Below, piece by piece: positions 908-57,698 of a stretch of 64,000 nt of DNA (the first letter of the stretch is position 1; every line of letters starts with the position of its first letter). Below the pieces are notes generated by a model, which worked only from the letters and a program-made list of their open reading frames with translations, did not search any database and was not told the DNA's origin. The stretch covers positions 930,001 to 994,000 of the forward strand of contig JALMLS010000455.1 in the NCBI GenBank assembly GCA_038496445.1. Reading direction: 5' to 3'. Made by a program: the position numbers and the translations under genes. The DNA is from Trichosphaerium sp. ATCC 40318. Its lineage: Eukaryota; Protista; Tubulinea.

Positions 908-3900
908 ATGGACAATAGTAAATGCGCTGATGATAATGACACTCTTTTGGTTTATCGTAAGTCGGGTTTTATTTGTCACGTTTGTTGCGTTACAGTTTTT
1001 ATTCATTCTTTGAACGCTAGGTAAAAAACTACTTGTCATCCTTGAAGAGGGTTGTTTTTACACAGGAACTATAAAAAGCTTATCGGGTATCAGACATGGT
1101 AAAGGTATACAAATATGGTACAAACAAGGTGTAGAATACCGACAGAAGGTTAAAATGTACATTGGCCACTATTTAGATGGTAAGATGACAGGGCGTGGAA
1201 AGTTGTATTGGGTTGATGGTAGCACATATGATGGAGACTTCTTGGATGGTAAGATGTCAGGGCATGGAGAGTTGTGCTGGCGAGATGGTAGTAAATACAT
1301 TGGTGACTTTTTAGATGGTATGAGAACAGGTAGTGGAGCGTTTTATTGGCCAGTTGAGAATAATTTTACCTTTGGTTCTTCTCGTTTAAAAAAAGCAATT
1401 GTCTCAACAGACTCTGATTTGAGGAATAAAAAATATGTTGGCAAATTTGTGGATGGCAAGAGTTCAGGCACTGGGAAGATGGTTTTCGTAAATGGAGAGA
1501 TATACGCTGGCGAGTTTTTGGATGGAAGGAGGAGAGATGGTTCTGGAGAGTATTATTGGCCGAGTGGTAAAAAATACAGTGGCAACTTTATCAATAGTGA
1601 GATGTCAGGGTTTGGAGAGTTGTGTTGGCCTAATGGCGACAAGTATATTGGCCAATTTGAGAATGGAAAGAGGAATGGTATTGGAGAGTTTTATTCAGCA
1701 AGTGGATATAAAGAAATAGGGTATTTCTCAAACAATAAGTTTCTTAAAATAGAAGAAGGCAAGATTTCTGGAACACCAAATCAAGACACGTTTGTTAAAA
1801 ACATGAACAGAATGCCATCTATTCGTATCAATTCTAAGGATAAGTCATACGAGGATATTAAAGCTGTGGTGTATGTAGAAAGGAAGTATTTCAAAAAAGT
1901 GATTGACTGGATAACTAGCAAGTGTGAAATTCATATGATTGATTCACCTTTACTAGACGGTTTCAAAATGATAAATTGTAAAGACAGTTATATGTTTATC
2001 AGCCATTCTAATTGGGGGTTTACTCAAATAGTTAGAGAGATAAAAGTACACAAAGATACACACAATTGTTTATGTGATGTGGTATTTATTTATGATCTTT
2101 CTGCATGTGATCCTGAGATGTCATTACAACAAGGTACATACCAACAACTCCCTCGTATCCTTTATATTTACAACACTGTTAGTCACAACTGTAGCACGTG
2201 AGATTCCAGAGGCACGTGTAATACCAATACACATGCACAATACAAAAAAAAATAGATCAGAATTTCAAGCTGTATACTACGCCAGCCAAAAAAAACCACC
2301 AATTGTTGCTGCTGCAATTAGTCACAAAGAACATGAATACATGAAGCAACTGAAAGCAAAATTGTTGGTTGTAGGACATGGAGGATCAGGCATGCTAATA
2401 CAATATGAGTTCCTTTACATTAACACAAATATTAGGAAAGACAACTTTAGTAAGGAAATTGTCAGGCGAAAAAGATGGAAGTGTTGATTCAACAGTTGGC
2501 TTTGATACCTCTTCTCTTTTGTGTGTTTGTTTGATATTCTATATGATGTTATACTTACATACATATTAGATATGGTGATTTATCATTCACTGTTTTAGAC
2601 TTTGCTGGACAGATGGAATACAAAGGACTTCACAAGTATTTTTTTGCAAAACAACTTGCCATTTACGTCATTGTTGTAAGATCCTAAAAACCACGTGTTC
2701 AAACCTTTCTCAATATTTATTTTAGATTGACTTATCACTATCAATTGTAGAACAAAAGAAGAACCTTAAGCACTGGGTTCATACCCTTAGCAAGGTTCTG
2801 TATGGACAAGATGCAACATTCTACTCAGTCATTGTTTTTGGATCCAAGTTGGACATCTGTTCAGGAGACTTAGAAGCCAATAAAAAAGTGCTTTACTCCT
2901 TCAATCAGATGAAATCATCAGTGTACCTTGTGTTTTGTTTAGACGGTACTCTTTATTCAAGATTATAAGTTCGTATACTAACGTTCAAAAGGTGTCCCTG
3001 ATCTTGAAAAGCAATTGAAGCGTCAAGCAAAATACATGAAGTCACAATACCCAAAAGTACCAACTCTCTATGATAGAGTACAAAAAGCATTAAAGAAAGC
3101 AGTTGTGAAAAAAGATAGATTGAAGGGTAACATCATATCCATGTACGTTGAAGTATCATACAGACACACTGAATAACATTTTGATAGTGAACAAGTCATC
3201 AAACTATTACCTGAAACTTGTAAAATGGCTCCAATTGAGTTGGTTGCTTCGTTAAATTACCTTCACTCTATTGGTAGTATTATGTTTGATGAGGTACTGC
3301 TGCTTGCCTACAACCTTTTTTATACACTTGAGAATTTGATTTAATTATCCTCTAGTCATCATACATGTTGTGTTTAGACCCTCCCATTCTATCTCGTATT
3401 ATGAGTGTCTTTGTTGCTCCTACAGAACACCTGAACAGACTATTGAATGACAATTCTCGGAATCACTGTGCTGTATTCACTTATGCAGAGGCCCATTATC
3501 GCATCTCAAAAGTATTCAAAAAGTGTACAATGGTTGAAGTGAAGCAAGTGATGAGATTCTTGGTTGAACTGTCATTTTGTGTTCGCTTGACAAAAGAAGA
3601 AAAGGTAACACTTTTGTAGTTGGTACATTATTTACTTATTGGTTAGAAAGTGTATGGCTCAGATGGATATATCATAATTTCATTATTGCCAAAAGCTGAT
3701 ATGTTGTACTTTCCACCCATGACAGAAAAGGAGTTCAGTATTGATTTAGTTAAACGCAGAAATGAGGAATTATCCATATTTTCTGACGTGTTTTACTTGA
3801 GCAAGTTACCAACAAAGTGGAGGTTACTATCATTCATACCTACAAAAGACAATAGGTTTGTAACAAATACAATTAAAACAATCAAGAAAAATTCAAAGAC

Positions 3901-6261
3901 TCAAACAATAGTACGTTTATGTGTTCATTCTCGTTTTGTTCCGCAGTATTGTTATGTTCTTTTTTAATTTGCATAGTCACTTCCTGCTACATATGAGCAC
4001 ATATCAACCGTTTCAAAGTTCTTGGCTTATCAGTTTGCTTCTTTAGAGATATCAACAGATGTGTTTAATAACTTGCAAACAAGATTAAGAGGTAACCGAA
4101 ACAATGTTGTATTTATGCTTACAAAATATCTAGAGTTCCACAACAAAGAGTACCGCCTCTTTTCAAATCTGATTGTATTGAATGATTTTTATGGTAACAC
4201 AATTGTGATGTACTATAATAACCATGCGGTAAACATTGTGATCAGAGGCAAGGTGCCATGGTTATGGAAGGTACGATAGCAGCATGGCGTTTAAGTATTG
4301 AAAACATTCACATAAGTTTAGAAATGTATTGGATCATACTTAGAACTGTTGGAAGGTAACCAAGTTCAACTATGCCCTGCAAGCATTCAAAGCGGTCATA
4401 TTGTTGTTGCTGCAAAACCTCCATATAAGTTTGAACAAACAGGTAACCCCCATATGAACTTGCCTACGCCACCAACTATTTATAGGAGACATCATCACTT
4501 TGTGTCATTTGAAAGAAGGTTTTCCTGTACTGTCAAAAAGCCAAAATAGCTTTTGGAGCAGTCTCCACGGTGAACAATTCTTAACACAAGGTGATTGGAA
4601 AGAAGACATGAACAGGTATCCGGGTTTGAGATGGACTTCTCTCACAAGCAATGAAACAACAAAAGTATGTGTAACACTTTTTCTAACTTGGTATTCATCT
4701 TTGATGACTGATCTAAAAAGGAGCGTTGTGATGAGTACTTGAGAGCTCGCAATATGTTCTACAAGTTTATGGGTACTGAAAGTGAGTCGTTCTTTAAACT
4801 TGAAAAGATTGTATTCTTTGACAATCGAACACTTGAAGCTGCATTCCAAGAAAAATATAATGATCTCATATCCAAAGTACTTCACAAAAAAAACTCAAGT
4901 GAGTCATGTGTACAAAATAGTCACCGTTCATACTAACGGTGATTTAGATTCACACAATGTCAGCATAGATAAAAATAAAATTGAAGCACAAGAACGTACA
5001 ATGAACCATTTGAAAAACTACACTCTTCGTGTTTCTGGTAATGAGCAAATCAATCTCATTGGTGGGTTTCATGGTACAACACAGGTACTGTTCTCATAAC
5101 AACTTGGATATTTATACATTCACAGGCCATCAGTTTCTCAATTGCGACCAACAACTTCAGAGAGCCGACAATGTCAGAAGACAAGAAAGACGAAGGATTC
5201 TTTGGTACTACATTTAAAAACCTTACCTTTCAAGACCATATCTAATAATTTAACAAAGGGAATGGTATCTACTTTACACAATACCCTGATTACGGTACTT
5301 GTCTATAATGTCATGTATATTGGAGTTAATAGAGCTGTTGTAGGAAAGGTATATGCTGAGTGGGAAAAGACAGATACTCCTTGTATGTTGATATCATGGG
5401 TGATGATGGGAAAACCCTATCCAGCTACTGAGGATCCAAACTTTGATGATCCAAACAGCCTGTATGGAAAAGGGTGCAAGGTAATCCATTGAAATTACCC
5501 ATTAGTTATGGTGTAACAATGTAAAAATAGGATGGATACGATTCGCACTATGCTATTGTTAAAAAAAAAACAAGTGCTCGCAATTGCTATCCTTGTAAAA
5601 AACATGAAAAACCAGACTTTGATGAAATTGTTGTATTCTCCAACAAACAAGTATGAACCTCACATTCTTGTTAATAACCCTTTTGGTTTCTTCTAACTAT
5701 TTATTTTAACAGATTCTTCCGAGATACCTTGTTTATTATCAAAGCACAAACACTATCAATCAATCACAGTTTAACATCAAGTACAGAGATGCAAAGTGTC
5801 TCATCTTATGGGTTGATGATAACTTATCTATTGAGAACAAAGAGATTGTGAAGCTATTAAAAGCTCGGCCAAAGAAAACTGAGGTACTTAACAGATATCA
5901 GGTGTTGCAGAGTTACTAACAACAATCTACAAGGTTATGGAAATGATGTCATCCTCAGAGGTTTTGGGATGGCTTCAAAAGTTTAAAGGATATTGTAACA
6001 ACAGGTTACGTATTATAACAAACAGGTACCGTAAAGGTGATGGAGATGAGAATGCAGCAGAGCACTTGGTGAAAAGTATAATTAAGCAAAATAAGAAATG
6101 GAGTAAAATACCTATTCTTGTGTTTTGTGGTATGTGTTTACATCAATCGTAACATACTCATCCTGTTGATTTTAGGAGATAAATCAAATGTCAAGTACCT
6201 CAAAAAGAAATACAAGAATGTTTCAGTCACAAACAGTCCTGCAGATGTATTAGCATTGTAA
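908..6261 (+). CDS. MORN-Roc-COR-PARP-pseudoreceiver Roco protein, copy 1 (multi-exon; divergent N-terminus)
   Basis: ATG 908, intron 957-1020, then MORN units. Roc motifs GHGGSG|KTT, DFAGQMEY, GSKLD. COR-like LNYLHSIGSI..LCLDPPILSRIM..YIIISLLP. PARP motifs FHGT, FGNGIYFT, DGYDSH, DEIVVF..QILPRYLVYY. Receiver-like ILWVDD..IITN..IPILVFC. TAA 6259-6261. Confidence 0.88.
1155..1745 (+). repeat. MORN repeat array of copy 1 (8 units including terminal half-unit, divergent, one insertion)
   Basis: 23-aa units YxGxFxDGKxxGxGxxxWxxG in ORF 1155..2201. Confidence 0.9.
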
Positions 6262-6389
6262 ACATGTGCGTTCATCATCTTTTATAACCTTGATTTCAGA
6301 TAGCCGCTAATGATGAAACTACAGAGGAAGCGCAAAAGATAGAATTTTATTTAAATAAAACATTTGGTAAATTCATACTCCTTGCACGT

Positions 6390-6630
6390 GCAATGTACCT
6401 TTCCGTTTTTATAATAATATTCGTACCTTACCTGTTCGTAGTAGTTCCACTCTTTAAATATGCCTTCCGTTTACACTTTTATAAGTTCGTAACATATGCC
6501 ATTCCCATGCCATTCTGTTGATTCTCCAACCAGTAGTCCATCTTCATAATAATGTTGTTCCTTCACATTTCCTATCTTGTAACGTTTTCCTTTTTAAAGA
6601 CTTCACGATGTGATTGATCATTACCATGAC
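6390..6630 (-). pseudogene. Decayed MORN-variant (MORN_2/YwqK-like) repeat fragment
   Basis: Minus strand gives YKIGNVKEQHYYEDGLLVGESTEWHGNG and EGIFKEWNYYEQVRYEYYKNGK in different frames with stops. Confidence 0.55.
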
Positions 6631-8192: not shown

Positions 8193-8224
8193 TTGAGCTC
8201 TTATTCTAAACAAACCGCAAAGAA

Positions 8225-8805: not shown

Positions 8806-11800
8806 ATGGACAAAAGTAAATCCGCGCGTGGTGCTTTTTTGGTTTTTAGTAAGTTGTTTTTTTGAAGTTGCTAGAGAATGGTTTTTATGCTTACCAAATA
8901 CGTAGGGTATGGAAATGGTAACAAATACGTCGGTGACTTTGTGGATGGCAAGTTAACAGGAAAAGGAAAGTTTTATTGGCCAAGTGGTGCCAAATACAAC
9001 GGTGACTTTTTGGATGATAAGAAAACAGGAAAAGGAGAGTATCATTCGCCAAGTGGTGCCAAATACAGCGGTGACTTTGTGGATGACAAGAGAACAGGAA
9101 AAGGAGAGTATTATTGGCCAGATCATACCAAATACATTGGTGACTTTGTGGATGGCAACAGAACAGGAAAAGGAGAGATTTGTTGGCCAAATGATAAGAA
9201 ATACATCGGTGACTTTGTGGATGGCAAGAGAACAGGAAAGGGAGAGTATTATTGGCCAGATGGTACCAAATACGTCGGTGACTTTGTAGATGGCAAGAGA
9301 ACAGGAAAAGGACAGTTTTATTGGCCAGAACGTAAGAAACACATTGGTGACTTTGTGGATGGTAAGAAAACAGGAAAAGGACAGAAAAATTCACCAAGTG
9401 GTACCAAATACATCGGTGACTTTTTGGATGGCAAGTTAACAGGAAAAGGAGAATATTATTGGTCAGATGGTACCATATACATTGGTGACTTTATGGATGG
9501 CAAGAGAACAGGAAAAGGAGAGTATTATTGGCCAAGTGGTAACAAATACATCGGTGACTTTGTGGATGACAAGATAACAGGAAAAGGAGAATATTATTGG
9601 GCAGATAATACTAAATACATCGGTGACTTTGCGGATGGCGAGAGAACAGGAAAAGGAGAGTATTATTCACTAGATGGTACCAAATACATCGGTGACTTTG
9701 TGGATAGCAAGAGAACAGGAAAGGGAGAGTATTATTCACCAAGGGGTACCAAATACGTTGGTGACTTTGTGGATGGCAAAAAAGCAGGAAAGGGAGAGTT
9801 TTATTGGCCAAGTGGTACCAAATACATTGGTGACTTTGTGGATGATAAGAGAACAGGAAAAGGAGAGTATTATTGGCCATATGGTAAAAAACAAATTGGT
9901 GACTTTGTAGATGGTAAGTTTCTTAATCCGGCAGATACCAAGATTTCTGGAGAACCCAATCAACACACCTTTTTAAAAATGGCAATAATTTGCACCAAAA
10001 GTACACTCACAGACTTTGAAGATGTGTATGTATTTTCAGAAGATATGGAGTATTTCAAGAAGCTGAATGACTGGTTTGTAGCTTCCACATTTATTACTTT
10101 ATCTCCAAATAACAGTTTCAAAATATCATGTCAAAAATCTTTAATTTTTGAGATCCTTTCAAAAGAGACATTCACTCGAGTTGTTGAACAGGTAAGACAA
10201 CACAAAGATGAAAACAATTGTGTCTGTGATGTGGTATTTGTTTATGATCTTTGTTTACATGACCCTGAGATATCATTACATCAAGGTACATACCAACAAG
10301 TATTCTCATATTTAACTGTGTACTCACATTAATACCTTAGTTACAACTGTAGCACGTGAGATTCCAGGGGCACGTGTGATACCAATAAAGATAAACAACA
10401 TTACAAAAAAACAATTTCAAGGTGAATATTACAAAATGTTGTCCCCTCAAAAAAAGCCATCAACTATTGCTTCTGGTATGGATCACACAGAATATGAATA
10501 CATGAAGCAACTGAAAGCAAAATTGTTGGTTGTGGGTCATGGAGGATCAGGTATGCTCAATACAATATGAGTTTCTTTACATTGACGTAAATATTAGGAA
10601 AGACAACTTTAGTAAGGAAATTGTCAGGCGAAAAAGATGAGAATGTTGATTCAACAGTTGGCTTTGATACCTCTTCTCTATTGTGCGTTTGTTTGATAAT
10701 AATATATTTAGATGTTATACTTATATACATATTAGATATGGTGATTTATCATTCACTGTTTTAGACTTTGCTGGACAGATAGAATACAAAGGACTTCACA
10801 AGTATTTTTTCGCTAAACAACTTGCCATTTACATCATTGTTGTAAGACCATGTGTGCAAACATTTTTTTATCAATATTTATTTTAGATCGACTTATCACT
10901 ATCAATTGTGGAACAAAAGAAGCACCTTAAGCACTGGGTTCATACCCTTAGTAAGTTTTTGCGTGGACAAGATGCAACATTCTACTCAGTGATAGTATAT
11001 GGATCCAAGTTGGATATTCATTCAGGAGACTTAGAAGCCAATAAAAAAGTGCTATACTCCTTCAATCAGATGAAATCGTCAGTGTACCTTGTGTTTTGCT
11101 TAGGCGGTACTTGTTTTATTTTAAACTAAGTAAGTCTCCTAATGTTGTTTCAAAAGGTATCTCTGGTCTTGAGAAGCAATTGAAGCGTCAAGCAAAATAC
11201 ATGAAGTCACAATACCCAAAAGTACCAACTCTCTATGACAAAGTACAAAAAGCATTAAAGAAAGCAGTTGCGAAAAAAGATAGATTGAAGGGTAACATCA
11301 TATCAATGTACGTTGAGTATCATCAGACACAGATGAATAACATTTTGATAGTGAACAAGTCATCAAACTATTACCTGAAACTTGTAAAATGGCTCCAATT
11401 GAGTTGGTTGCCTCGTTAAATTACCTTCACTCTATTGGTAGCATTATGTTTGATGAGGTACTGCAACCTTTTCTACGAGCTTGAATTTGATTTAATTATC
11501 CTCTAGTCATCATACATGTTGTGTTTAGACCCTCCCATTCTATCTCGTATTATGAGTGTCTTTGTTGCTCCTACAGAACACCTGAACAGACTATTGAATG
11601 ACAATTCTCGAAATCACTGTGCTGTATTCACTTATGCAGAGGCCCATTATCGCATCTCAAAAGTATTCAAAAAGTGTACAATGGTTGAAGTGAAGCAAGT
11701 GATGAGATTCTTGGTTGAACTGTCATTTTGTGTTCGCTTGACAATAGAAGAAAAGGTAACACTTCATAACACGTTTTTATTGGTACATTGTTTAGTTATG

Positions 11801-14418
11801 GTTTAGAAAGTGTATGGTTCAGATGGATACATCATAATTTCATTATTGCCAAAAGCTGATATGTTGTACTTTCCACCCATGACAGAAAAGGAGTCCAGTA
11901 TCAATCTAGTTAAACACAGAAATGAGAAATTATCCATATTTTCTAAAGTGTTTTACTTGAGCAAGTTACCATCAAAGTGGAGGTTACTATCATTCATACC
12001 TAAAAAAGACAATAGGTTTGTAATCAAGACAATTAAAGCAATCAAGAAAAATTCAAAGACTCAAACAATAGTACGTTTAAACGTTCAGTTTTTGGTACTT
12101 TCTTTTTTTAATTTACATAGTCACTTCCTGGTAAATATGAGCTCATATCAAGCGTTCCAAATTTCTTGGCTTATCAATTTACTTCCCCAGAATTGTCAAT
12201 AGATGTGTTTAATAACTTGCAAACAAGATTAAGAGGTAAGCGCCGAAGTAATGTTGTATTTATGCTTACAAAATATCTAGAGTTCCACAACAAAGAGTTC
12301 CGCCTATTTTCAAATCTGATTGTATTGAATGATTTTTATGGTAACACAATTGTGCTGTACTATAATAACCTTGCCATAAATATTGTGATCAGAGGCAAGG
12401 TGCCATGGTTATGGAAGGTACAATAGCAAATATCATAGTTAAGTATTGTAAGTATTCATCTATGTTTAGAAATGTATTGGATCATACTTAGCACCATTGG
12501 AAGGTAAACAAGTTCAGCTATGCCCTGCAAGTATTCAAAACGGTCACATTGTTGTTGCTACAAAACCTCCATATAAGTTTGAACAAACAGGTAACCACAA
12601 ATGTGAAGGTCAACTTTACTTACAACAATCTGATAGGAGATATTGTCACTGCCTCTCACTTGAAAGAGGGCTTTCCTGTTCTGATAAAAAGCCGAAATAG
12701 CTTTTGGAGCAGTCTCAACGGTGAACAATTCTTAACACAAGGCGATTGGAAACAGAATTCCCAAAAGTATCCAGGTTTGAGATGGACTTCTCTCACAAGC
12801 AACGAAACAACTAAAGTATGTGTAACACTTGGCATTCTGACTTGGTATTTCATCTTTGCTGACTGAATCTAAAAAGGAGCGTTGTGATGAGTACTTGAGA
12901 GCTCGCAATATGTTCTACAAGTTTATGGGTACTGAGAGTGAGTCGTTCTTTAAACTTGAAAAGATTGTATTCTTTGACAATCAAACACTTGAAGCTGCAT
13001 TCCAAAAAAAATATGAACAGCTCGTTGCTAAAGTACTTCAATCTAAATCTTCAGGTAAGTGATTGAACATTTGCTAGCAATTCTTATTAATCCATCATTT
13101 AGATATTAACGATAGCAGTTTGAGTGCAGTTGATAAAAATAAAATTGAAGCACAAGAACGTACAATGAACCATTTGAAAAACTACACTCTTCGTGTTTCT
13201 GGTAATGAGCAAATCAATCTCATTGGTGGGTTTCATGGTACAACAGAGGTACTGTCATCATATTAAGTATGCTACTTATACGCACGCATAGGATACCAGT
13301 TTCTTAATTGCGACAAACAACTTCAGAGAGCCAACAAAATCAAAAGACAAGAAAGATGAAGGATTCTTTGGTACTACATTTAAAAACCTTACCTTTCAAC
13401 ACCACAGCTAACAATTTAACAAAGGGAATGGTATCTACTTTACACAATACCCTGATTACGGTACTTGTCTATAATGTCATGTATATTGGAGTTAATAGAG
13501 CTGTTGTAGGAAAGGTATATGCTGAGTGGGAAAAGACAGATACTCCTTGCATGTTGATATCGTGGGTGATGATGGGAAAACCCTATCCAGCTACTGAGGT
13601 TCCAAGCCCAAACAATTCAAACAGCCTCTATGGAAAAGGATGCAAGGTAATCCATTGAAATTACACACTAGCTGTGGTGTAACAATGTAAAAATAGGATG
13701 GATACGATTCACACTATGCCATTGTTAAAAAAACAACAAGTGCTCGCAATTGTTATCCTTGTAAAAAACATGAAAAACCAGACTTTGATGAAATTGTTGT
13801 ATTCTCCAACAAACAAGTACAGTCGCCACAATTACTATTATTTATTTAACTTTTTTAATCAGATTCTTCCGAGATACCTTGTTTATTATCAAAGCACAAA
13901 CACTATCAATCTTGAACAGTTCAACATCAAGTACAGAGATGCAAAGTGTCTCATCTTATGGGTTGATGATAACTTATCCAATGAGAACAAAGAGATTGTG
14001 AAGCGATTGAAAGCTCGTCCAAAGAAAACTGAGGCACTTAACAGATATCACAGGTGTTGCAGGGTTACTAACAACAATCTACAAGGTTTTGGAAATGATG
14101 TCATCCTCAGAGGTTTTGGCATGGCTTCAAAAGTTTAAAGGATATTGTAACAACAGGCTACGTATTATAACAAACAGGTACCGTAAAGGTGATGGAGATG
14201 AGAATGCAGCAGAGCACTTGGTGAAAAGTATAATTACGCAAAATAAGAAATGGAGTAAAATACCTATTCTTGTGTTTTGTGGTATGTGTTTTACAAACAA
14301 CAATCGTAACATGCTCATATTTTTGATTTTAGGAAACAAATCAAGTGTCAAGTACCTCAAAAAGGAATACAAGAATGTTTCAGTCACAGATAATCCTGCA
14401 GATGTATTAGCTTTGTAA
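8806..14418 (+). CDS. MORN-Roc-COR-PARP-pseudoreceiver Roco protein, copy 2 (longest MORN array; lacks exon 2)
   Basis: ATG 8806 (MDKSKSARGAFLVF), intron 8849-8905 splices in frame into the array; same Roc, COR, PARP and receiver motifs as copy 1; TAA at 14416-14418. Confidence 0.9.
8922..9920 (+). repeat. MORN array of copy 2: 69-bp tandem repeat, 15 GDF units (14 full + terminal half)
   Basis: Repeated aaatacatYggtgactttgtggatg...acaggaaaaggagag...tattggcc; counted in ORF 8878..10332. Confidence 0.95.
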
Positions 14419-14674: not shown

Positions 14675-16605
14675 TTATTCTTCACTAGCCTCGCCGCTAT
14701 ATTCTACATTTACAGAAGAGTAACCCGGTGAGCTTGCTGAATCTGTTAGCAGCGATCTATCAGAGGCGTTTTCTTCTTGCATAGAAAGACATCGTAAAAA
14801 TGAATAAATACCAATAGGTAGCAATAAAATAGGTGAAAGAATTGCAAATCCCGAGACAAGTGTGAGTGTCATGATATTACTTGATGCCCAAAATTTACTG
14901 ACTACCTTTACTAGTTGCTTTTGAATCAGAAACCCATATGCAAACGCATCAAAGAGACCTACAATGGTAAGGGTTTTTGGAGCAAAAAAAGACAAAATGC
15001 AAAAAAAAAACCTTAAAGGCCTCATCTGACATACTAACACTCAAAATGAAAAATAAAAGCTTAGGGTTATTCCTATACTTTGCTTATTGTGTAAAAATCA
15101 AATTGTAATTGTTCAAAGGGCACCCTTTGTTATTGCCTGTCTAGTTGAATTTTTTTTGCAAGAAGTTTTGAACTTGTGTACCTTGTAAGTTCCGTAGAAT
15201 GCTGTATATAACCACCAAAAAGAATACATTACATGCCTCGCCTGTGGAAACGTGGTATATATTATTGATACAATAAGCAACAACATCAGGAATCCAGAAC
15301 AATAAAATGAATGTAAAAAGTAGTATCCTGAGAATAAATGCTCTATGCTTTTTTTTATTCGTTGGAGTGTACGTCAAGTTCCTCATCTTGAAACAGAATG
15401 ACTTAATAAAACGTAATAAAAAACAAGTAAAGGAATGTGTGACTGTTATACAAGGCAAAAAAATTGCACATTTGACGTGTGTGCTCATTGAAGGAGACGG
15501 TTTTTCAAATTCAATGAAAAAAAAACTTCATTTTTTTTCGGCGACCCATGGCTTGTAGAGGAGGAAATAGCTTGAAAATAATTTGTATACGTACCACTAC
15601 TATAACAGATATATACAGTATTATACATAATAGAACTGATGCCAACACAGGTAATAACCATAAGTAAATATGATAAGGTTGTATAGGTGCTGCATATCCT
15701 GCTACGTTAAGTTCCATCCTTGCAATCGCTATTGTCACCGTAACATTTATCAAAGGTAATCCCCATGACATTACATGGAAGGCTATGAAGTATCGGTTCC
15801 ATTTAATATTCGTATCAAGGCGTTTTATAGTCAGCAAATAAATCTAAGAATAAAATAAGAAATAGCCTCAAAAAATAAAAAATGTTTTGACAAGTTTGAC
15901 GGTTATACTATTCTCAAAATATAAGAGTTTAGTATATATCTTGTGAAGTATTGTCGAGTATATAATAACATACAAATGAAAGAAATAAAGATTGGGAGAA
16001 TCTGAATCGTTGAAAAAAGGAAAAGAAAAGAACAAGCTAGAACTTCAAAACCTTCAAAATGTGACGTACAAGCAAATAGAATCCGACACAATTTGTCCAG
16101 ACTATACTAGCTAGAGCACCAAACTGAAAAGTAGCTCGAAAAAGAAGCATAAGCGCTTGACTTTGACCATAAAACTTATCCATTGTTAGAATCAATATTT
16201 TTTCTACAACATTACTAGCAGCCCAAATAAACTCGCTTGATGATATATAAAAAGCCAAGTACTATAACAACCAAAACCCGTCAGTAAACACAACACATGA
16301 ACACATTAAACAAAAGCGCAACAGACACGTACCATCATTTTTCGGACACGTTTTTTATTACTCCGTTTTGGTAAAAGCATAAAAATACACATAACAAAAG
16401 TTGTTCCGTAGAGTGACCTATTAATAAAATAATCACGTGGGATGAACAAGAAGTGATGAAAAAACAAAATTTAGAAGTACATTATCCCGGTTACTAAAGA
16501 AGATATTGTAATAACTCGTCTCTCCACAGGACTGAAAGTTGTTTGACATACACCTCGATTAGTGATATTTGCAGTCTCCATGTCCCCATTGATATCTGTT
16601 ATCAT
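14675..16605 (-). CDS. cAMP-receptor-like / GCR1-type 7TM GPCR
   Basis: Spliced MITDINGDMETANIT.. followed by hydrophobic helices: FYISSSEFIWA, FQFGALASIVWTNCVG, FHVMSWGLP, FILLFWIPD, LRNLQG|LFDAFAYGF; motifs typical of the Dictyostelium CAR/Crl family. Confidence 0.75.
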
Positions 16606-18515: not shown

Positions 18516-18552
18516 TTTCTTTTTTTTTTTTTTTTACAAAGAATCAATTGTT

Positions 18553-21500
18553 CTAATACGCAAAAGATGATGATGAGAAGGATTTAGCAGCTTCTTCAAA
18601 TACTCTAAAAAACCAACCAGTAAGAAAACAGAACACTACAAAAAAAGAAACAAAAGAAACAAGAGAATCGTACCGTTCTTGTTCAACAAACTTGGCCAAG
18701 ATTTGTCCCATTTGTTTCTCATCAGCAGCCAATCTCTTCTTGGTAACCTCAACCTCGAACAACTCCATCATCTTATCTCCAGACAACTGTCCAATTTCAC
18801 CTTGAATCTCAGAGTACAAGTCGTGGAACCTAGACAGAATAAGCACCAACACTAAACCAAAAAAAAAAAACCCTAAAAACATTGACACGTACATTGGTGT
18901 CAAGAAAAAGTTGTGACACTTTAGAAGAACAGAAGATGTCAATCTGTTCTTGGTGGCCTGGAAAATTTCTCCAGCCATCTCATAAACAATACGTTTCATC
19001 TCGTTTGGATCACGAGTGTTGAAGTCCTTGGTGTAAGCGCTGAAACTAAAAAAAAGCACAAGTAAGCAAAACAGACCCGCAAATCGAAGCACCAACAACG
19101 CACCTAAAGTTTTGAAAGTAAATCAATTGTGTAGTGTAAAACTCGTCCATGCACTTTTCTAGGGCTTTAGCTGCAGTATCATCAACAAAGTTATAGTATA
19201 GGTTCCTGACTTCATTAACAAAGAATGGGAATTCTTCGACTGGAACATCAAACGTTTGTTGAACACGACCGAGGCGAACTCCTAGAGAAGGACCTGCACC
19301 AAGTGGACTACCTCCGAGTGGTGATGGACCAGATTGAGCAGCTCCCTTTCTGCTCTTTGCTGCCTTTTTCTGTACAGCCATCATCTTCTCAGCAATACCA
19401 GGAAGACGTTTCATAATGTAAACAGCACGTTTAAATAGTTGTTGAATCAACGACTTAAACAGAGCTTGAGACTGTTGTCGGGCGAGATCACATGCCTAAT
19501 AAAGTGTGAGTACACAATTACACGTTAAGCTTATGCCACACGTACAGTCCAGGCATAGGTTGATACGTTATTAAGGCGTCTAGCACCAGCTGCTGTGGCA
19601 ATAGTGCCAACATCAATTTTAGGGGCTTTGAGATGTGTACCAACAATTTTGAACTCTGCCAAGAGTCTGTGCAACTGTTGTCCACCAAATACTTTAGCTT
19701 CGGAACCAGATACTTTCTTATCGCTAGATGAGATGTTCTGTCCTTTGAGGTAGTTGTAAAATTGTCCACACTCAGCTTTTTCTTCTTGTAGAGTTTGACC
19801 GTTTTGTTGAGGATTACCTAAGGATGAATTTAGCAACAAAAAAAAACAGATCTAAAACAAAGGTTCTTCATACCTTCAATGTTGCCACGAGGTGAAATCA
19901 ACTTCTCAATGGATTGCAAGAAGTTCATGACGTAGTTTGAGGCAGCAGAGCGCATGCGTGAGATTTCCATACTTGCTAGACGGTTACGAATAGAGTTGAG
20001 GTCATCTTCGACTTGCTTCTTAAGCGCACTATATTTTAAAAAAATGAGCAATTACCAACCAAAACAAACAAAAAAAAAATCAATAAAACGAATGAATATG
20101 CGTACCGCAATCTGTTTTGAATGAGCGGAGTGTTGTCTTGGTATGTACGAAGAGTGGAATCCCAGATGAATAACCTCAAGGACTGTACACCAACATTACC
20201 TTCATACCTTCTATCGAATCTCAATTGTTCCAAAGCCTTCAAATCAGCTTGGTAATAATCAATGAGGGTCTTTCTGAACACACCCTTATCAGATATATTC
20301 TCTTCAGTGTGGTCGACAAGAGTAACAAAGAAAGCCTTATCAGTAACACCAGGAACAATACTCATAAGGTAGTTATTCACGTCACGCATATCAGAGAAAG
20401 ATTTAAGCAATACATTGAACTTGGAGAAACAAAACAATGTTCTGTTCAATGTTGGGTCAACCTTCTTAGCAAATTGTACAAGAGGGCTTTGTTCACTACC
20501 AGTTTTAGCCTAAGAAAACTATTAACAATCGCACAACACCGAAAAAAAAAACCAAAAAACGAATTTCTTTTCTCGTTATTCCAAAAGGAGATTTCATACC
20601 TCTTCTACTGCAACAATAATACGATGTGGAAGTTTAGTCTGTTCTACAACAATAGCTTCAATTTCTTTAGCTTTGCTGCCGTCTTCACCAAGGGCCAACC
20701 CAGGTGTATCAATAATGGTCATATTCCAGCAAAATTTATAGTTGTACTGGATAATGAGTGGGATTTGGGTGAATGTATTACTAAGTAAGCAAGATTGATT
20801 AGCGAACAAGCAAACAAAAGCAATATTCTCGTCAAAACAAAAAAAAGCTCGCAGCGAGCGAAAAAAAGATTGTTTGGCGAAATTACGTATCATAACAATA
20901 CGAAATTTACAACCAACGTCGCTTTTGCGCGTTTACGTTAGGATTGTTTAGATTTTTTTTATAATTAAACCAGAGGGTGTTCTATACACTCAAGAGTTCA
21001 TTATTGTAGCGTAAAGAAGGTAACGAATAAAAAACCTTCAAAGTAGAACAGAAAATGTCTTTCGTCTCTAGCTCTTACCGTTTGGCAATTTCGTCTTTAA
21101 CTTGCTCTAAAGAGCACTGCATATCAGTGAAACCGAGTTCTTTGTGAGCATAATCGCGTTTGATTGTTATTTTGGGCTCATCGGCTTTCTCATCGGAAAT
21201 GAGTTGTATATGAATAGGACGGTTTGTGGTACTAGTTTGGCGTTAATTAAACTTCATGAAGCAACTCTTGAAATTAAGAATTGGTTGTTGTAGCGACATT
21301 GCTGTGTATATAGTATTTCTATGCGAATACGCGCTAATGATGCTAAAACACGCTCTAATAGGTTTGCGCCTTATGCTGTTGTTATTTGCGTACGCTTCTG
21401 CCGTGTTATGGAAGGCGTGGCCAAGGAACGCTTCTATGAGTGAAGATCTGCCTTGTCCAGCTGGACCGATAAAAACTATTTCTGGAGCACGTACAAATGC

Positions 21501-26030: not shown

Positions 26031-26039
26031 TTTTGCTAG

Positions 26040-42679: not shown

Positions 42680-43115
42680 GATAAAACCACATGGTGTAAA
42701 CAAAGAGCGGTATGAAAATGCACCAACATCAATGTGGTTGATGGTAAGCGACGTGGTGACTAGTATGAAAATGGAGAATTTGCATCAACGTCCATATGGG
42801 TTGATGGAAAGAAACTAACTTGAGGTTTAAACAAAGTGGTATGCTCCTTGCTTGTTCGTTCGGCACCACATACACACCCCTTCATGTTTGCCATTAACAA
42901 GATAATATTTTGTGCGCAATTGGCCGTTGGTGGCCAACACTTGTATTCTCCTTCAAATTTACCATTGACTTTAGTGCCATGCAGCCACAGTTGACCATTT
43001 GGATACCACCTCTTGTACTCTCCATCAAGTGCGCCATTGACAAAATTGTATTGCAAACTCACTCGTCCATTATCATGCCAACTCTTGCATTCTCCATGTT
43101 GACTACCATGTGACC
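42680..43115 (-). pseudogene. Decayed MORN-variant (MORN_2) repeat fragments, partly on both strands
   Basis: Minus: HGECKSWHDNGRVSLQYNFVNGALDGEYKRWYPNGQLWLHGTKVNGKFEGEYKCW then frameshift; plus ~42700-42845: VDGKRRGD*YENGEFASTSIWVDGKK. Confidence 0.7.
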
Positions 43116-43630
43116 AACACCGTTGATGAGTCTAAAATAAAATTAAAAAGTGTTGTACTAAAAAACCCACAGTACAAGTTGGTTTTTGGATGTTCTACTT
43201 TCCCATTTTCCATGTTTTTTCATGTCGCTATCAAACCTAGTGTTCCTTGCTGCATTTTTCGAAAGTAGAGGCCACTTTAAATACACTGATGATTCTAAAT
43301 CGATGATATCAAGCTGTATCTCAACTGGAAGGAGCACTAGATGGCAAGTTTCTGATTTTACACTAGATCTCTACATTTAGTTGTTATGTGCTTAATTAGA
43401 TTATTGAAAAGTTGTCAGTACCTTGTATAGAACGCTAATGGTGTATACGAGAATCCTCAACAAGAAATAAATACCACAGATCAGTATGTACATTTCTAAC
43501 ATTGCGTTGTGCCCTTGAGTACCGACTAGTTATTCAGCAAATACAACAAATGATTTTGAATAGCTTGGACTCAAGCGTGAAAATCAATTGAACTTTTCGA
43601 ACACAGCACAAGCAATCGCCGAATAAAAAA

Positions 43631-46003
43631 ATGCGTGTCGTACTAGCTCTATTAGTACTCGTTGTATTATCAAGTTACGCGCAAAAGCCTCCAAAACCGC
43701 ACGTGGTATTCCTTTTGATAGACGACTACGGTTGGGCCAATGTTGGTTACCACAGGTACGTACAGTAGTATTTTATATACCGTTAACGGTTTTTATCTTG
43801 TGACACCCTTTCCAATACCAAACGTTGGCTATCTTTTTAATAGTTTGTTTTTTACATTTTATTTTGTTTTACTAGCGAGCTAGCACTTTATCACATTTCG
43901 GCAAAATAACCTCATACTAATAGGAACCCTCCTACTAAAGAGGTTCAAACACCTAATATCGATGCATTAGTTGCTGAAGGCATAGAATTAGATAGACACT
44001 ACGTATTCAAGGTATGTCACTTTTCACGCTACTTTTCCGATTTCTTTTCTTTTGCCACGTGTTTTTCTTCTTATTTGCCTTTTTACACCAATTGATATAG
44101 TACTGCTCTCCAACTCGTTCTGCTATACAATCAGGAAGAAATCCTATCCACGTTAACGTGCTAAATATCCCACCAACCTTTCACAATGTTACCGATCCTG
44201 TGTCTGGTTTTCAAGGTATTCCAAGGAACATGACGGGCATTGCTGAAAAGATGAAGAGTGCTGGTTATGCTACTCATATGGCAGGGAAATGGTAAGCAAT
44301 AATTAATAATTATCAAAGTGCTAAACGATCCTAGGGACGCTGGCATGGTAAAGCTTCGTACAAATGAAAACTTTTAATTTAACTTCTATAATATAGGCAA
44401 CACCTGATCATTCTCCTCTTGGAAGAGGATATGAAACAAGTCTTCATTACTTTCATCATGCAAACGACTACTGGACGTACGTTATTGTGCAAAAAAAAGA
44501 GCCGGCAGCTTTTTGCGTATCGAGATATTTGCAACTTTGTATCACGTGTTATTCCTCATGGTACTTAAGGTATGATGTTGGTCAGTGTTCAAAAGAAAAT
44601 ATTGTAGATTTGTGGCATACCGATGAGCCAGCACGGGCACTTACTAATCCAAAAACATGCAGTCAGAGTAATCAAGCAAGCGATTGCGTTTACGAAGATC
44701 AGTTATTTGAACAACATGTTTTTGACGTTTTGGATAATCATGATCCATCAACCCCTCTCTTCCTATTCTGGGCACCTCACTCTATTCACGCACCTCTAGA
44801 GGTAAGATACCATGATATAAGAATACTCTCATTCACAAATACACTCAAGGTACCTCAAGAGTACGTCGACAAGTTCTCGTTTATCGACAAAAAACCAAGA
44901 CAAATGTACCACGTGCGTGATATTTTTCTTCGCCTGTAGTTTTGTTCTTGACATTTAAACAGGCTATGGTAAACTTTATCGATTCCCGTATTGGTATGAT
45001 CGTAAATAAGCTAAAAGAAAAAGGAATGTTTGAAGATACATTGATTGTAATGTCAGCAGATAATGGAGGACCAATCTATTCAAATGGTACAATACCTGTT
45101 CTTGCCTTTATTTTGTTTTAACCTTATAAGGTTCTGCTGGAGCTAATAACTGGCCACTCAGAGGAGGAAAGATGAGCAACTTTGAAGGAGGCGTAAGAGT
45201 CAACGCCTTTGCATCTGGAGGTCTAGTACGTATACAAAATCAAACTCTCGATAGAGAATCTACACTTTTGTTTATACAAAGTAGATTCCAAAAGAACGAA
45301 GAGGAACTAAGGAAGAAGGATATATATGTGGATGGGATTGGTATGCTACATTCTGTGCTATAGCAGGTGTTGATCCAACTGATGAAAAAGCTGCTAAAGG
45401 TAACTATAAAATTCATAAGCGTTTTCTTAGCTTTGTCTAGCAAAATTACCTCCAATCGACTCCCTCAACATGTGGCCTCTTTTATCCGGACAAACTAAGA
45501 CAAGTCCACGTAATATAATTCCCCTGGGAAGTCCAGATCCTCCTAGTGCTAGTGGTAGTATGGTACCTACAATAGTTAATGGCGTAATAGTAGGTGAATG
45601 GAAGGTAACAGTTACTTTAGCAAAGTAATGAACTAAATTCTTATAGCTCCTTGTTGGTGATGTAACTCAAGATTCTTGGACTGGTCCACAGTACCCTAAC
45701 ATTACTACAAACTGGATATCAACAGCTCATCATCTCTCCTGTGGAACCAGCGGTTGCCTATTCAACATTAAGAATGGTAAACAAAACTATTTTTTTTTAC
45801 ACTCCTTTGACTAACTTTTAACAGATCCAACTGAACACGTTAATCTGGCAAGCCAAGAACCTGCAATGCTCGCTGAAATGCATACTCACCTGAAAAGAGC
45901 TCAAGCGTCAGTATTTAGCCCTCATAGAGGTACTGTATCACCAAAAGCATGTGAAGACGCTCTAGGCAAGTATAAAGGATATTGGGGTCCTTTTGTCGAA
46001 TAA
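43631..46003 (+). CDS. Arylsulfatase B-like secreted/lysosomal sulfatase
   Basis: Signal peptide, PHVVFLLIDDYGWANVGYH, TPNIDAL, CSPTRS formylglycine motif, GKW, SADNGG, NNWPLRGGK, GYWGPFVE*. Confidence 0.92.
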
Positions 46004-52200: not shown

Positions 52201-55200
52201 ATGGACAAAAGTAAATCCGCTCAAGGCGATTTTTTAGTTTTTAGTAAGCGTCTTATTGTTTTTTTTGAAGTTGTTATCAATAATCCTTATGTAGGTAAAA
52301 TATTAATTCTGGACAAGGGTTGTTTTTACAAAGGGACTTTAAAAAATGGTATCCGACATGGTAAAGGCGAACAGACATGGTACTGTGATAACGATGTTAG
52401 TGGTAAGAGAGTGTTTTTTGTGATGATTACCAAAAATACATAGGCTATGAAAATGGTAGCAAATACATTGGTGACTTTGTGGATGACAAGAAAACAGGAA
52501 AAGGAGAGTATTATTGGCCAAATGGTAACAAATACATCGGTGACTTTGTGGATGATAAGATAGCAGGAAAAGGAGAGTATTATTGGCCAGATGGTACCAA
52601 ATATATTGGTGACTTTGTGGATTACAAGAGAACAGGAAAAGGAGAGTATTATTGGCCAGATGGTTACAAATACATTGGCGACTTTGTGGATGACAAGAGA
52701 ACAGGAAAAGGAGAGTATTATTGGCCAAATGGTACCAAATACATTGGCGACTTTGTGGATGACAAGTTTACAGGAAAAGGAGAGCTTTATTATTATTGGC
52801 CAGGTGGTAGAAAATACATTGGTGACTTTGTGGATGACAAGTTAACAGGAAAAGGAGAGCTTTATTGGCCAGATGGTAGAAAATACATTGGTGACTTTGT
52901 GGATGACAAGAGAACAGGAAAAGGAGAGTTTTATTGGCCAGATGGTAAAAAATACATTGGTGACTTTGTGGATGGCAAGAGAACAGGAAAAGGAGAGTTT
53001 TATTGGCCAAATGGTAGCAAATACATCGGTGACTTTGTGGATGGCAACAGAACAGGAAAAGGAGAGCATTATTCACCAAGTGGTAGCAAATACATTGGTG
53101 ACTTTGTGGATGGCAAGTTTCTTAATCCGGCAGATACCAAGATTTCTGGAGAACCCAATCAACACGCCTTTTTCAAAATACCAATAATTTATACCAAAAG
53201 TACATCCACAGACATTAAAGATGTGTATGTATTTTTAAAAGATATGAAATATTTCAAGAAGCTGAATGACTGGTTTATAACTCCCACGTTTATTACTTTA
53301 CCAAATGACACTTTCAAAATATCATGTCAAAAATCCTTAATTTTTGAGATCCTTTCAAAAGAGACATTCACTCGAGTTGTTGAACGAATAAGACAACACA
53401 CAGATGAACACAATTGTGTCTGCGATGTGGTATTTGTTTATGATCTTTGTTTACATGACCCTGAGATATCATTACATCAAGGTACACACCAACAGTATTC
53501 TCATATTTAACTGTGCACTCACATTAATACCTTAGTTACAACTGTAGCACGTGAGATTCCAGGGGCACGTGTGATACCAATTAAGATAAATGACATTACA
53601 AAAGAACAATTTCAAGGTGAATATTACAGATCGTTGTCCCCTCAAAAAAAGCCATCAACTATTGCTTCTGGTATGGATCACACAGAATATGAATACATGA
53701 AGCAACTGAAAGCAAAATTGTTGGTTGTGGGTCATGGAGGATCAGGTATCCTCAAGCAATATGAGTTTCTTTACATTAACGTAAATACTAGGAAAGACAA
53801 CTTTAGTAAAGATGTTGTCAGGTGAGAAAGATGACAGTGTTGATTCAACAGTTGGCTTTGATACCTCTTCTCTATTGTGCGTTTGTTTGATATTCTATAT
53901 GAGACATAACACTGACACATGTAGATATGGTAATATATCATTCACTGTTTTAGACTTTGCTGGACAGATGGAATACAAAGGACTTCACAAGTATTTTTTC
54001 ACAAAACAACTTGCCATTTACGTCATTGTCGTACGTCTTAAGACCACGTGCACAAACATTTTCTTATCAATATTTATTTTTAGATTGACTTATCACTATC
54101 AATTGTGGAACAAAAGAAGCACTTGACACACTGGGTTCATACCCTTAGTAAGTTTTTGCGTGGCCAAGATGGAACATTCTACTCAGTGATAGTATATGGA
54201 TCCAAGTTGGATATTCATTCAGGAGACTTAGAAGACAATAAAAAAGCACTATACTCCTTCAATGGGATGAAATCGCCAGTGTACCTTGTGTTTTGCTTAG
54301 ATGGTACTCATTTTATTTTAAACTAAGCAAGTTTCCTAATGTTGTTTCAAAAGGTATCTCTGATCTTGAGAAGCAATTGAAGCGTCAGGCAAAATACATG
54401 AAGTCACAATACCCAAAAGTACCAACTCTTTATGACGAAGTACAAACAGCATTAAAGAAAGCAGTTGTGAAAAAGGATAAATTGAAGGGTAACATCTTAT
54501 CATTGTACGTTGAAGTATCATACATAAACACTGACGAATAACATTTTCATAGTGAACAAGTCATTAAACTATTACCTAAGACATGTAAAATGGCTCCAAT
54601 TGAGTTGGTTGCTTCGTTAAATTACCTTCACTCTATTGGTAGCATTATGTTTGATGAGGTACTGCTGCTTACCTAAAACCTTTTCTTTGTGCTTGAATTT
54701 GATTTAATTATCCTCTAGTCATCACACATGTTGTGTTTAGACCCTCCCATTCTATCTCATATTATGAGTGTCTTTGTTGCTCCTACAGAACACCTAAACA
54801 GACTATTGAATGACAAGTCTAGAAATCACTGTGCTGTATTCACAGATGCAGAGGCCCATTATCGCATCTCAAAGGTATTCAAACAGTGTACAATGGTTGA
54901 AGTGAAGCAAGTGATGAGATTCTTGGTTAAATTGTCATTTTGTGTTCGCTTGACAAAAGAAGAAAAGGTAACACTTTGTAACATATTTTTTTTATTGGTA
55001 CATTATTTACTTACTGTGGTTAGAAAGTGTACGGCTCAGATGGATATGTCATAATTTCATTATTGCCAAAAGCTGATATGTTGTACTTTCCACCTGTGAC
55101 AGAAAAGGAGTCCAGTATCAATCTAGTTAAAGAAGGAAAGGAGAAATTATCCATATTTTCTGAAGTGTTTTACTTGAGCAAGTTGCAAACAGAGTGGAGG

Positions 55201-57698
55201 TTACTATCATTCATACTTAAAAAAGATGATAGTTTTGAGACCAAGACGATTAAAACAATCAAAAAAACTTCTAATAGTCAAAAAATAGTACGTTTAGTCA
55301 CGTGTTCTCTTTGGTTTTTTTTCTCAATTTTTTCTTTGCTTTCTTGTTTATTGTTATTGTTGCTAAACAACCTTTAGTCACTTCCCGACAAATATGAGCA
55401 CATATCAGCCGTTTCAAAGTTCTTGGCTTATCAATTTACTTCTCCAGAAATGTCAATAGATGTGTTTAATAACTTGCAAACAAGATTAAGAGGAAAGCAC
55501 CGAAATAATGTTATTTATGCTTACAAAATATCTAGAGTTCCACAACAAAGAGTTCCGCCTATTTTCAAATCTGATTGTATTGAATGATTTTTATGGTAAC
55601 ACAATTGTGCTGTACTATAATAACCTTGCCATAAACATTGTGATCAGAGGCAAGGTGCCGTGGTTATGGAAGGTACGATAGCAAATATCATAGTTAAGTA
55701 TTGTCATAATTCATATCTATGTTTAGAAATGTATTGGATCATACTTAGCATCATTGGAAGGTAAACAAGTCCAGCTATGCCCTGCAAGTATTCAAAACGG
55801 TCACATTGTTGTTGCTACAAAACCTCCATATAAGTTTGAACAAACAGGTAACCACAATGTGAATGTCAACTTTGCTTACAACAACCTGATAGGAGATATT
55901 GTCACTGCCTCTCACTTGAAAGAGGGCTTTCCTGTTCTGACAATAAGCCGAAATAGCTTTTGGAGCAGTCTTCATGGTGAACAATTTTTAACACAAGGCG
56001 ATTGGAAAGAGAACAAGAAAAAGTATCCAGGTTTGAGATGGACTTCTCTCACAAGCAACGAAACAACTAAAGTATGTGAAACACTTTTCTAACTTGGCAT
56101 TCAGACTTTGTATTTCATCTTTGCTGACTGATCTAAAAAAGGAGCGTTGTGATGAGTACTTGAGAGCTCGCAATATGTTCTACAAGTTTATGGGTACTGA
56201 GAGTGAGTCGTTCTTTAAACTTGAAAAGATTGTATTCTTTGACAATCAAACACTTGAAGCTGCATTCCAAAAAAAATATGAACAGCTTGTTGCTAAAGTA
56301 CTTCAATCTAAATCTTCAAGTAAGTGATTGTGAACATTTGCTAGCAATTCTTATTAATCCATCATTTAGATATTAACGATAGCAGTTTGAGTGCAGTTGA
56401 TAAAAAGAAACTTGAAGCACAAGAACGGACAATGAACCATTTGAAAAACTATATTCTCCGTGTTTCTGGTAATGAGCAAATCAATCTCATTGGTGGGTTT
56501 CATGGCACAACAGAGGTACTGTCATCATATTAAGTATGCCACTTATACGCACACATAGGATACCAGTTTCTTAATTGCGACCAACAACTTCAGAGAGCCA
56601 ACAAAGTCAAAAGACAAGAAGAAAGATGAAGGATTCTTTGGTACAACGTTTACATTACTGCTTTTTTCAATGTGCACGTGTCTAATTTACTGTATTACAA
56701 AGGGAATGGCATCTACTTTACACAATACCCAGACTACGGTACGTGTTTATAGTCATGCGCTTGAAGTTAATAGAGCTGTTGTAGGAAAGGTGTATGCTGA
56801 GTGGAACAAGACAGATACTCCTTGTATGCTGATATCGTGGGTGATGATGGGAAAACCTTATCCAGCTACTGAGGTTCCTAACTTTGATGATCCAAACAGC
56901 CTGTATGGAAAAGGATGCAAGGTAATCCATTGAAATTACCCATTAGGCTAACAATGTAAAAATAGGATGGATACGATTCACACTATGCCATTGTTAAAAA
57001 AAAAACAAGTGCTCGCAATTGCTATCCTTGTAAAAAACATGAAAAACCAGACTTTGATGAAATTGTTGTATTCTCCAACAAACAAGTACTAATTCACCAC
57101 AGTTATTTTAATTAACATTCTATTGTAAAAGATTCTGCCGAGATACCTTGTTTATTATCAAAGCACAAATACTATCAATCTATCACAGTTCAACATCAAG
57201 TACAGAGATGCAAAGTGTCTCATCTTATGGGTTGACGATAACTTATCCAATGAGAACAAAGAGATTGTCAAGCTATTAAAAGCTCGGCCAAAGAAAACAG
57301 AGGTACACAAACCAAATGGAATATGTTGAAGGGGTACTAACACTCCAAAAGGTTTTGTCAATGATGTCATCCTCAGAGGTTTTGGGATGGCTTCAAAAGT
57401 TTAAAGGATATTGTAATAACAGGCTACGTATTATAACAAACAGGTACCGTAAAGGTGATGGCGATGAGAATGCAGCAGAGCACTTGGTGAAAAGTATAAT
57501 TAAGCAAAATAAGAAATGGAGTAAAATACCTATTCTTGTGTTTTGTGGTACGTGTGTAACACAACAACAATCGATTGTATCGATGTTAAACATGCTCATA
57601 TTTTGAATCTAGGAAACAAAGCAAAAGTCAAGTACCTCAAAAAGAAATACAAGAATGTTTCAGTCACAGATAATCCTGCAGATGTATTAGCCTTGTAA
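52201..57698 (+). CDS. MORN-Roc-COR-PARP-pseudoreceiver Roco protein, copy 4 (intact only if a GA-donor intron is spliced)
   Basis: ATG 52201; exons 52201-52243, 52295-52402, then the array; all Roc, COR, PARP and receiver motifs present; TAA 57696-57698; 43-nt GA..AG segment 55493-55535. Confidence 0.85.
52460..53120 (+). repeat. MORN array of copy 4: 10 GDF units
   Basis: 69-bp tandem units in and just upstream of ORF 52479..53510; one unit has a TAT expansion (ELYYYWP). Confidence 0.94.

Follow-up and report, generated by a model that had tools for sequence, protein, structure and literature searches.

A 64,000-nucleotide stretch of the genome of the amoebozoan Trichosphaerium sp. ATCC 40318 (contig JALMLS010000455.1, positions 930,001 to 994,000; hereafter the window, numbered from its first base) carries a real, transcribed and selectively maintained gene family whose predicted products link a MORN repeat array to a Roc-like GTPase and a PARP-type catalytic domain within a single reading frame. 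From the N terminus, the most likely order of modules is a MORN array, a linker, a Roc-like GTPase, a COR-like region of ~450 residues, a PARP-type (H-Y-E) transferase and a small alpha/beta tail. On balance, we read the four genes as members of a family that is confined to one lineage, was duplicated recently and encodes large cytoplasmic ADP-ribosyltransferases that would be switched by GTP. The modules themselves are graded below by the evidence for each, whereas what we infer is the identity of the COR-like region, the fold of the tail, how the domains are coupled and what their biological role is.

Gene models, splicing and selection

The same exon plan recurs at four paralogous loci in the window (Table 1). 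A preliminary description of this DNA had claimed four copies of one architecture. The loci, their coordinates and the exon plan all held on reanalysis, but the description had missed that copy 3 lies on the minus strand and that copies 3 and 4 are frameshifted. Gene models were built with a splice-aware dynamic-programming gene finder, copy 2 was then curated by hand, and exon boundaries were moved from it to copies 1, 3 and 4 by DNA alignment. The exons of the PARP region, two of which comprise only 27 and 12 codons, are readable only by hand from the four-copy DNA alignment. Here the gene finder's own reading was replaced, because a wrong but open frame competes with these two short exons.

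All four copies share their intron positions from exon 3 of copy 2 on. A short second exon, encoding the first MORN-like unit, is present in copies 3 and 4 and absent from copy 2 (8849-8905 in copy 2 versus 52244-52443 in copy 4). As the first intron of copies 3 and 4 could be read through in frame without a stop, its removal is only predicted. GC content in the window is 34-40%, and the GT-AG introns of its genes measure 41-91 nt, mostly 43-57 nt, with a donor consensus of GTA[C/A]. Copies 1 and 2 each contain one GC-AG intron, with the GC donor at 2390 in copy 1, where the intron splits the P-loop codons, and at 14034 in copy 2; the other copies have GT at the corresponding sites. A tblastn search of the window with the copy 2 protein revealed no further family copy.

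Two public RNA runs of this organism (X1 and X2) yield contigs with three GT-AG joints of copy 2, corresponding to introns 11107-11156, 11756-11806 and 13817-13862. Across intron 11107-11156, one contig matches copy 2 without a difference, and others show a few differences that are probably derived from paralogues. We note that one contig over 13631-13894 keeps intron 13647-13696 and lacks intron 13817-13862, representing either a partly processed transcript or contaminating DNA.

Comparison of the copies reveals an identity of 91-95% in exons versus 75-87% in introns. The ratio of nonsynonymous to synonymous substitution rates (dN/dS) lies at 0.28-0.39 overall and stays below 0.55 in every domain block, which shows that the predicted exons evolved as coding sequence; across the catalytic half the ratio is ~0.3-0.4. 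Copy 1 joins a divergent N-terminal half, with a linker 46% identical to that of copy 2, to a tail that is 93% identical at the DNA level.

The frames of copies 3 and 4 are each interrupted in exon 11. One additional base in copy 3 (within 29328-29346) leads to a stop at codon 836 of ~1346, and a 2-nt deletion in copy 4 (after 55511; 55505-55515) leads to a stop at codon 930 of ~1441. The two lesions differ (+1 and -2 nt), shift the frame in the same way and fall within ~25 nt of the exon, a co-location expected by chance with a probability of ~1%. A frame-restoring intron inside exon 11 was considered for both copies and judged unlikely: its donor is the second-weakest of 76 and its acceptor carries G at -3. 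Consequently, the frameshifts are read as recent inactivations or assembly errors.

Modules of the predicted proteins

Pfam (24,736 families) and Protein Data Bank (PDB) searches were run exon by exon or on short pieces, including four junction-spanning peptides of at most 60 residues from the spliced model; the longest stop-free stretches that join two exons are 79 and 115 residues. Exon by exon, the Pfam matches within the family were confined to MORN, Roc and PARP, and those in the PDB to small GTPases.

The MORN assignment is certain. PF02493 lies above its gathering score in all four copies (95.9 to 217.3 bits versus a cutoff of 22.5), with E values of 2.3e-30 in copy 1 (6 repeats), 1e-66 in copy 2 (13 repeats), 4.4e-28 in copy 3 and 2.2e-49 in copy 4. 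Tandem Repeats Finder identifies 69-bp tandem units, each encoding 23 residues, in numbers of 2.8, 14.6, 5.4 and 9.6 in copies 1-4, respectively. Profile and periodicity thus bear out, in every copy, the variable MORN array that had been proposed from the open reading frames. In copies 2-4 the unit follows the consensus Y-I-G-D-F-V-D-G-K-R-T-G-K-G-E-Y-Y-W-P-D-G-T-K and varies mostly at positions 8, 10, 16, 18-20 and 22. Pooled dN/dS is 1.65 at these seven positions versus 0.33 elsewhere in the unit, a contrast that is suggestive only and circular, since the positions were picked after inspection; diversification at a few repeat positions is possible. No unit of one copy has a positional orthologue in another, and two units from the same copy resemble each other no more closely than units from different copies do, a pattern that fits repeated unequal exchange.

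Pfam also returned Integrase_H2C2 in the MORN arrays (8878-10332 and 52446-53480), with zero accepted stretches, and this label is a repeat artefact rather than an integrase. Between copies 3 and 4 lies an unrelated open reading frame with MORN-variant repeats (42763-43131, minus strand; Pfam MORN_2, E 4e-8).

The linker between the MORN array and the P-loop had no Pfam match and no relative in a word-indexed search of 5.8 billion clusters, and an AlphaFold model of a contiguous linker fragment was unusable (predicted local distance difference test, pLDDT, 39). Similarly, the 83-residue COR-A-like exon, searched against 1.84 billion representative proteins, returned one spurious repeat protein and no true relative. 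As neither piece finds a relative in these collections, the family, and probably the organism's proteome, is absent from them.

Downstream of the linker, all four copies carry the motifs GHGGSGKT (interrupted by an intron), DFAGQ and GSKLD. The 35-residue exon 5 of copy 2 has Roc as its lone Pfam match (E 0.0035), and a 79-residue stop-free piece of copy 4 (53794-54030), which reads through an in-frame intron, matches Roc at 1.3e-5, Arf at 4.7e-5 and Ras at 0.024. In the PDB, the GTPase piece finds Arf1 best (5e-4) and the LRRK2 Roc domain weakly (0.66), while a scan of bacterial and archaeal genomes with it gave one chance match, lying opposite a gene. Motifs and profiles support a GTPase of the Ras superfamily with Roc as the best fit, an assignment that is not decisive.

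The region that follows is named COR-like for its position and motif resemblance. Its position, its size and its LH-x-x-G ... LDP motifs recall COR-A, a lead that no search confirmed. It evolves with a dN/dS of 0.27-0.46.

A PARP-type catalytic domain with an intact H-Y-E triad is supported by several features of the spliced sequence. PF00644 is the only family returned for the 60-residue core that runs from the H to the Y (E 0.0015, 18.5 bits, profile positions 47-94 of 199). In copy 2, FHGTT is followed at +35 residues by G-N-G-I-Y-F, at +85 by F-D-E-I-V-V-F and then by Q-I-L-P-R-Y-L-V, and the last junction of the domain (intron 13817-13862) is among those confirmed by RNA. H, Y and E are kept in order in all four copies, with copy 3 reading GTYF. 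For comparison, the spacing in PARP1 is 34 from H to Y and 92 from Y to E. The spacing of H, Y and E, the downstream E-I-V-V-F ... Q-x-x-P-x-Y-L-V motif and a second Tyr, 11 residues past the catalytic one, fit PARP catalytic domains. An atlas search with a PARP exon returned noise only (scores of at most 0.44).

The C-terminal tail contains alternating hydrophobic strands, including LILWVDDN and RIITN. It had been described as receiver-like, a label that no search confirmed: the Asp expected to accept the phosphoryl group in a receiver is replaced by Asn (in RIITN) in all copies, and no profile matches. The tail may at most be a pseudo-receiver-like alpha/beta module.

Proposed mechanism and alternative readings

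In a GTP-switched ADP-ribosyltransferase of this layout, the MORN array would bind a membrane or a protein partner. Depending on its nucleotide, the GTPase would then alter the oligomeric or conformational state of the core formed by Roc and the COR-like region, as in Roco proteins, whose GTP cycle takes them from dimer to monomer and back (PMC11052575, PMC6337361); in a bacterial Roco, GTP drives monomerisation (PMC11052575). This change in the core would in turn switch on the PARP-type domain and lead to NAD+-dependent ADP-ribosylation of targets or of the protein itself, with the tail as a possible autoinhibitory or docking module. The transferase domain of PARP15 is reported to need dimerisation for activity (PMC12572374).

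Several findings weigh against this reading. RNA coverage of the family in both runs is very thin and no contig covers more than two exons; the splicing proposed in the preliminary description is confirmed at the three introns of copy 2, but a single full-length mRNA, or any whole-gene transcript, was not seen. Two of the four copies are frameshifted. On its 79-residue partial piece, Roc reaches 25.8 bits, just under the Pfam cutoff of 27, with Arf close behind. The match to PF00644 spans only a quarter of the profile and falls under the cutoff of 26.7, and the other pieces of the PARP-type domain, including the C-terminal piece, had no Pfam or PDB match. The same holds for exons 9, 10 and 11 and a 60-residue exon 8/9 junction piece of the COR-like region, and for exon 21 and a 60-residue junction piece of the tail, in which a receiver (PF00072) would have been expected.

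Consequently, the five modules first proposed (MORN, Roc, COR, PARP and receiver) now stand at different levels. MORN is firm, above its cutoff. The Roc claim keeps its G1, G3 and G4 motifs and Roc as the top Pfam family, but at a sub-cutoff score and with Arf1 as the best PDB match; the PARP claim keeps PF00644 as the sole match of its core and a PARP-like H-Y-E spacing, but with a sub-cutoff score and partial coverage of the profile. Both are moderate assignments, while COR and the receiver-like tail have no match of either kind. With COR unverified, the proteins are candidate members of the Roco family.

Among the alternatives, it is quite possible, if short of probable, that the family encodes an ordinary signalling enzyme, that is, a MORN-tethered Roco-type GTPase that regulates the cytoskeleton, trafficking or development via ADP-ribosylation, with the cluster reflecting recent tandem duplication and no role in conflict. 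The 11 Roco genes of Dictyostelium act in chemotaxis, division and development (PMC4104024, PMC6337361), and among amoebozoan Roco proteins other enzyme outputs already occur, for instance myotubularin in Entamoeba (PMC4104024). The dN/dS of 0.3-0.4 across the catalytic half agrees with such a role. However, the family was undetected in the 1.84 billion representative proteins and is therefore not a conserved housekeeping gene; in addition, copy and repeat number are unstable and two copies are frameshifted.

We consider it unlikely that the family functions as an NLR-like immune or conflict receptor, in which, by analogy, a diversifying MORN array would sense ligands from pathogens or viruses, the Roc-COR switch would license the response and the PARP-type domain would act as an NAD+-using effector. 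The number of MORN units differs between copies (3, 15, 5 and 10) and their positional orthology is lost, as might be expected of a sensor, but tandem repeat number varies even without selection. The elevated dN/dS at the seven variable positions relative to the MORN scaffold points the same way, but shares the circularity noted above. Breakage of half of the copies resembles birth-and-death turnover and expression in runs X1 and X2 is low, while the enzymatic half is under ordinary purifying selection. In brown algae, an immune receptor function has been proposed for LRR-ROCO genes (PMC3341825, PMC11378527); MORN repeats, however, are familiar chiefly as tethers to membranes or proteins and less as ligand sensors. 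Furthermore, the only NTPase found is a Ras-superfamily GTPase and not a STAND-class NTPase (NACHT or NB-ARC), and the family is therefore not an NLR. The sensor-switch-effector logic of NLRs is a reasonable analogy for the layout, and it is from this analogy that the putative immune role is drawn. A broader version, in which the family would represent an amoebozoan receptor class, independent of NLRs and arranged in birth-and-death clusters, whose Roco switch couples a diversifying MORN sensor to a PARP-type effector, strikes us as distinctly unlikely.

Finally, it is very doubtful that the C-terminal labels are wrong altogether, with a degenerate PARP-like region or an unrelated fold, something else in place of COR and receiver, and a MORN and small GTPase protein with an unassigned tail as the result: a single 60-residue piece matches PARP, under the Pfam cutoff, every other piece of the C-terminal 800 residues lacks a match and the atlas search of one PARP exon gave noise, but PF00644 is the sole family out of 24,736 models, its match sits exactly on the H and the G-x-G-I-Y-F stretch, the downstream motif, the H-Y-E spacing and the Tyr at +11 fit what is established for PARP domains, and all four copies conserve the residues of the triad region under purifying selection.

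Coordinates and other features of the window

Table 1. Features of the gene family, in positions of the window.
Feature	Position	Strand	Remarks and basis
Copy 1	908-6261	+	22 exons, 1427 aa, frame intact; N-terminal half (MORN and linker) divergent
Copy 2 (reference model)	8806-14418	+	22 exons, 1519 aa, frame intact
Copy 3	27189-32379	-	23 exons; frameshift in exon 11
Copy 4	52201-57698	+	23 exons; frameshift in exon 11
MORN array, copy 1	1158-1350, diverged units to ~1700	+	Tandem Repeats Finder, Pfam
MORN array, copy 2	8913-9918	+	14.6 units; Tandem Repeats Finder, Pfam, unit table
MORN array, copy 3	31761-32131	-	Tandem Repeats Finder, Pfam
MORN array, copy 4	52451-53117	+	Tandem Repeats Finder, Pfam
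Linker domain, copy 2	9940-10500	+	MORN to P-loop, one intron inside; no recognisable relative
Roc-like small GTPase (predicted), copy 2	10500-11106	+	Exons 3-6; G1 GHGGSGKT, G3 DFAGQ, G4 GSKLD; Pfam pieces
COR-like region, copy 2	11157-12815	+	Exons 7-13, ~455 aa; named by position and motif resemblance only
PARP-type ADP-ribosyltransferase domain (predicted), copy 2	12877-13892	+	Exons 14-20a, seven exons; four-copy reading, PF00644, RNA-confirmed intron 13817-13862
Putative triad, copy 2	Y in 13425-13460	+	H in FHGTT (exon 15), Y in GIYF (12-codon exon 17), E in FDEIVVF (exon 19); alignment
C-terminal tail, copy 2	13893-14418	+	Exons 20b-22, ~140 aa; translation; receiver-like by motif only

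Three further loci were noted in the window. Just downstream of copy 2 lie open reading frames rich in hydrophobic stretches (14678-15843, minus strand), one with a weak Pfam match to 7tm_2 (E 0.0066). A predicted 7-exon gene (18553-20893, minus strand; ~650 residues) carries a DTPG-type motif and may encode a large GTPase; two pieces of it had no Pfam match. A predicted 12-exon gene (43631-46003, plus strand) has a product that resembles a secreted sulfatase, and one piece of it had no Pfam match.

Comparison with known systems

The combination of MORN, Roc and PARP-type modules had been put forward as undescribed, and the sources searched agree. Surveys of the PARP family (PMC2964712, PMC4245714) mention neither Roc, GTPase nor MORN, and Roco reviews (PMC6337361, PMC4104024) and the brown-alga ROCO paper mention neither PARP, ADP-ribosylation nor MORN. 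Similarly, the combination is missing from a survey of NTP-dependent conflict systems, full-text literature searches for it gave nothing relevant, and it is absent from the protein databases searched.

Judged by sequence, the family is best filed as a putative new variant of Roco-type proteins. With LRRK2, the Dictyostelium Roco kinases and the Chlorobium tepidum Roco it shares N-terminal repeats, a putative Roc-type GTPase with a DFAGQ-type switch II, a large region in the position of COR and a predicted enzymatic output, with a span of ~630 residues from the P-loop to the output domain. In contrast to these proteins, the repeats are MORN rather than LRR or ankyrin, the predicted output is PARP-type rather than a kinase, an extra linker precedes Roc, and COR is unrecognisable by sequence. 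The architecture is not listed in the Roco reviews, in which outputs are kinases or none (PMC6337361, PMC4104024). LRRK2 is the reason that Roco GTPases are under intensive study. If our reading is true, a Roco-like switch wired to an ADP-ribosyltransferase would make Roc-COR a general regulator of enzymatic outputs and would offer a new system for how nucleotide state reaches a catalytic domain.

The myotubularin-LRR-ROCO-kinase fusions of Entamoeba likewise are amoebozoan Roco proteins with an unusual extra enzyme-family domain (PMC2927912, PMC4104024), but there the extra domain is myotubularin phosphatase-like and the kinase is retained. The LRR-ROCO proteins of brown algae also form an expanded Roco family with variable repeats and are proposed NLR-like receptors (PMC3341825, PMC11378527), a candidacy also cited in the Acanthamoeba genome paper. 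Their LRRs vary by shuffling of one-repeat exons and no enzymatic effector is reported in the brown-alga paper, whereas the family described here varies 69-bp units inside one exon and continues into a PARP-type domain.

Tankyrase and other repeat-plus-PARP proteins (PF00644) similarly join protein-binding repeats to an H-Y-E PARP catalytic domain. The motif at the end of the domain presumably resembles the tankyrase type. Unlike tankyrase, the family has neither SAM nor ankyrin, and a GTPase module stands between repeats and catalytic domain; a GTPase partner is unmentioned in the PARP surveys (PMC2964712, PMC4245714). If the reading is true, a PARP catalytic domain would here be under direct G-protein control.

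The likeness to TIR-NLRs, of the NLR/STAND type, lies in a single chain that would join repeats for sensing to a nucleotide switch and an effector that uses NAD+, and in clustered paralogues with fast turnover. Should the conflict reading prove true, a non-STAND receptor design would be added to eukaryotic innate immunity and questions of immunity in free-living amoebae would become testable. The differences from TIR-NLRs are in the parts and in their arrangement: a Ras-like GTPase is predicted in place of the STAND ATPase as the switch and an ADP-ribosyltransferase in place of the TIR NADase as the output, and the domain order is reversed, with the sensor N-terminal and the effector C-terminal.

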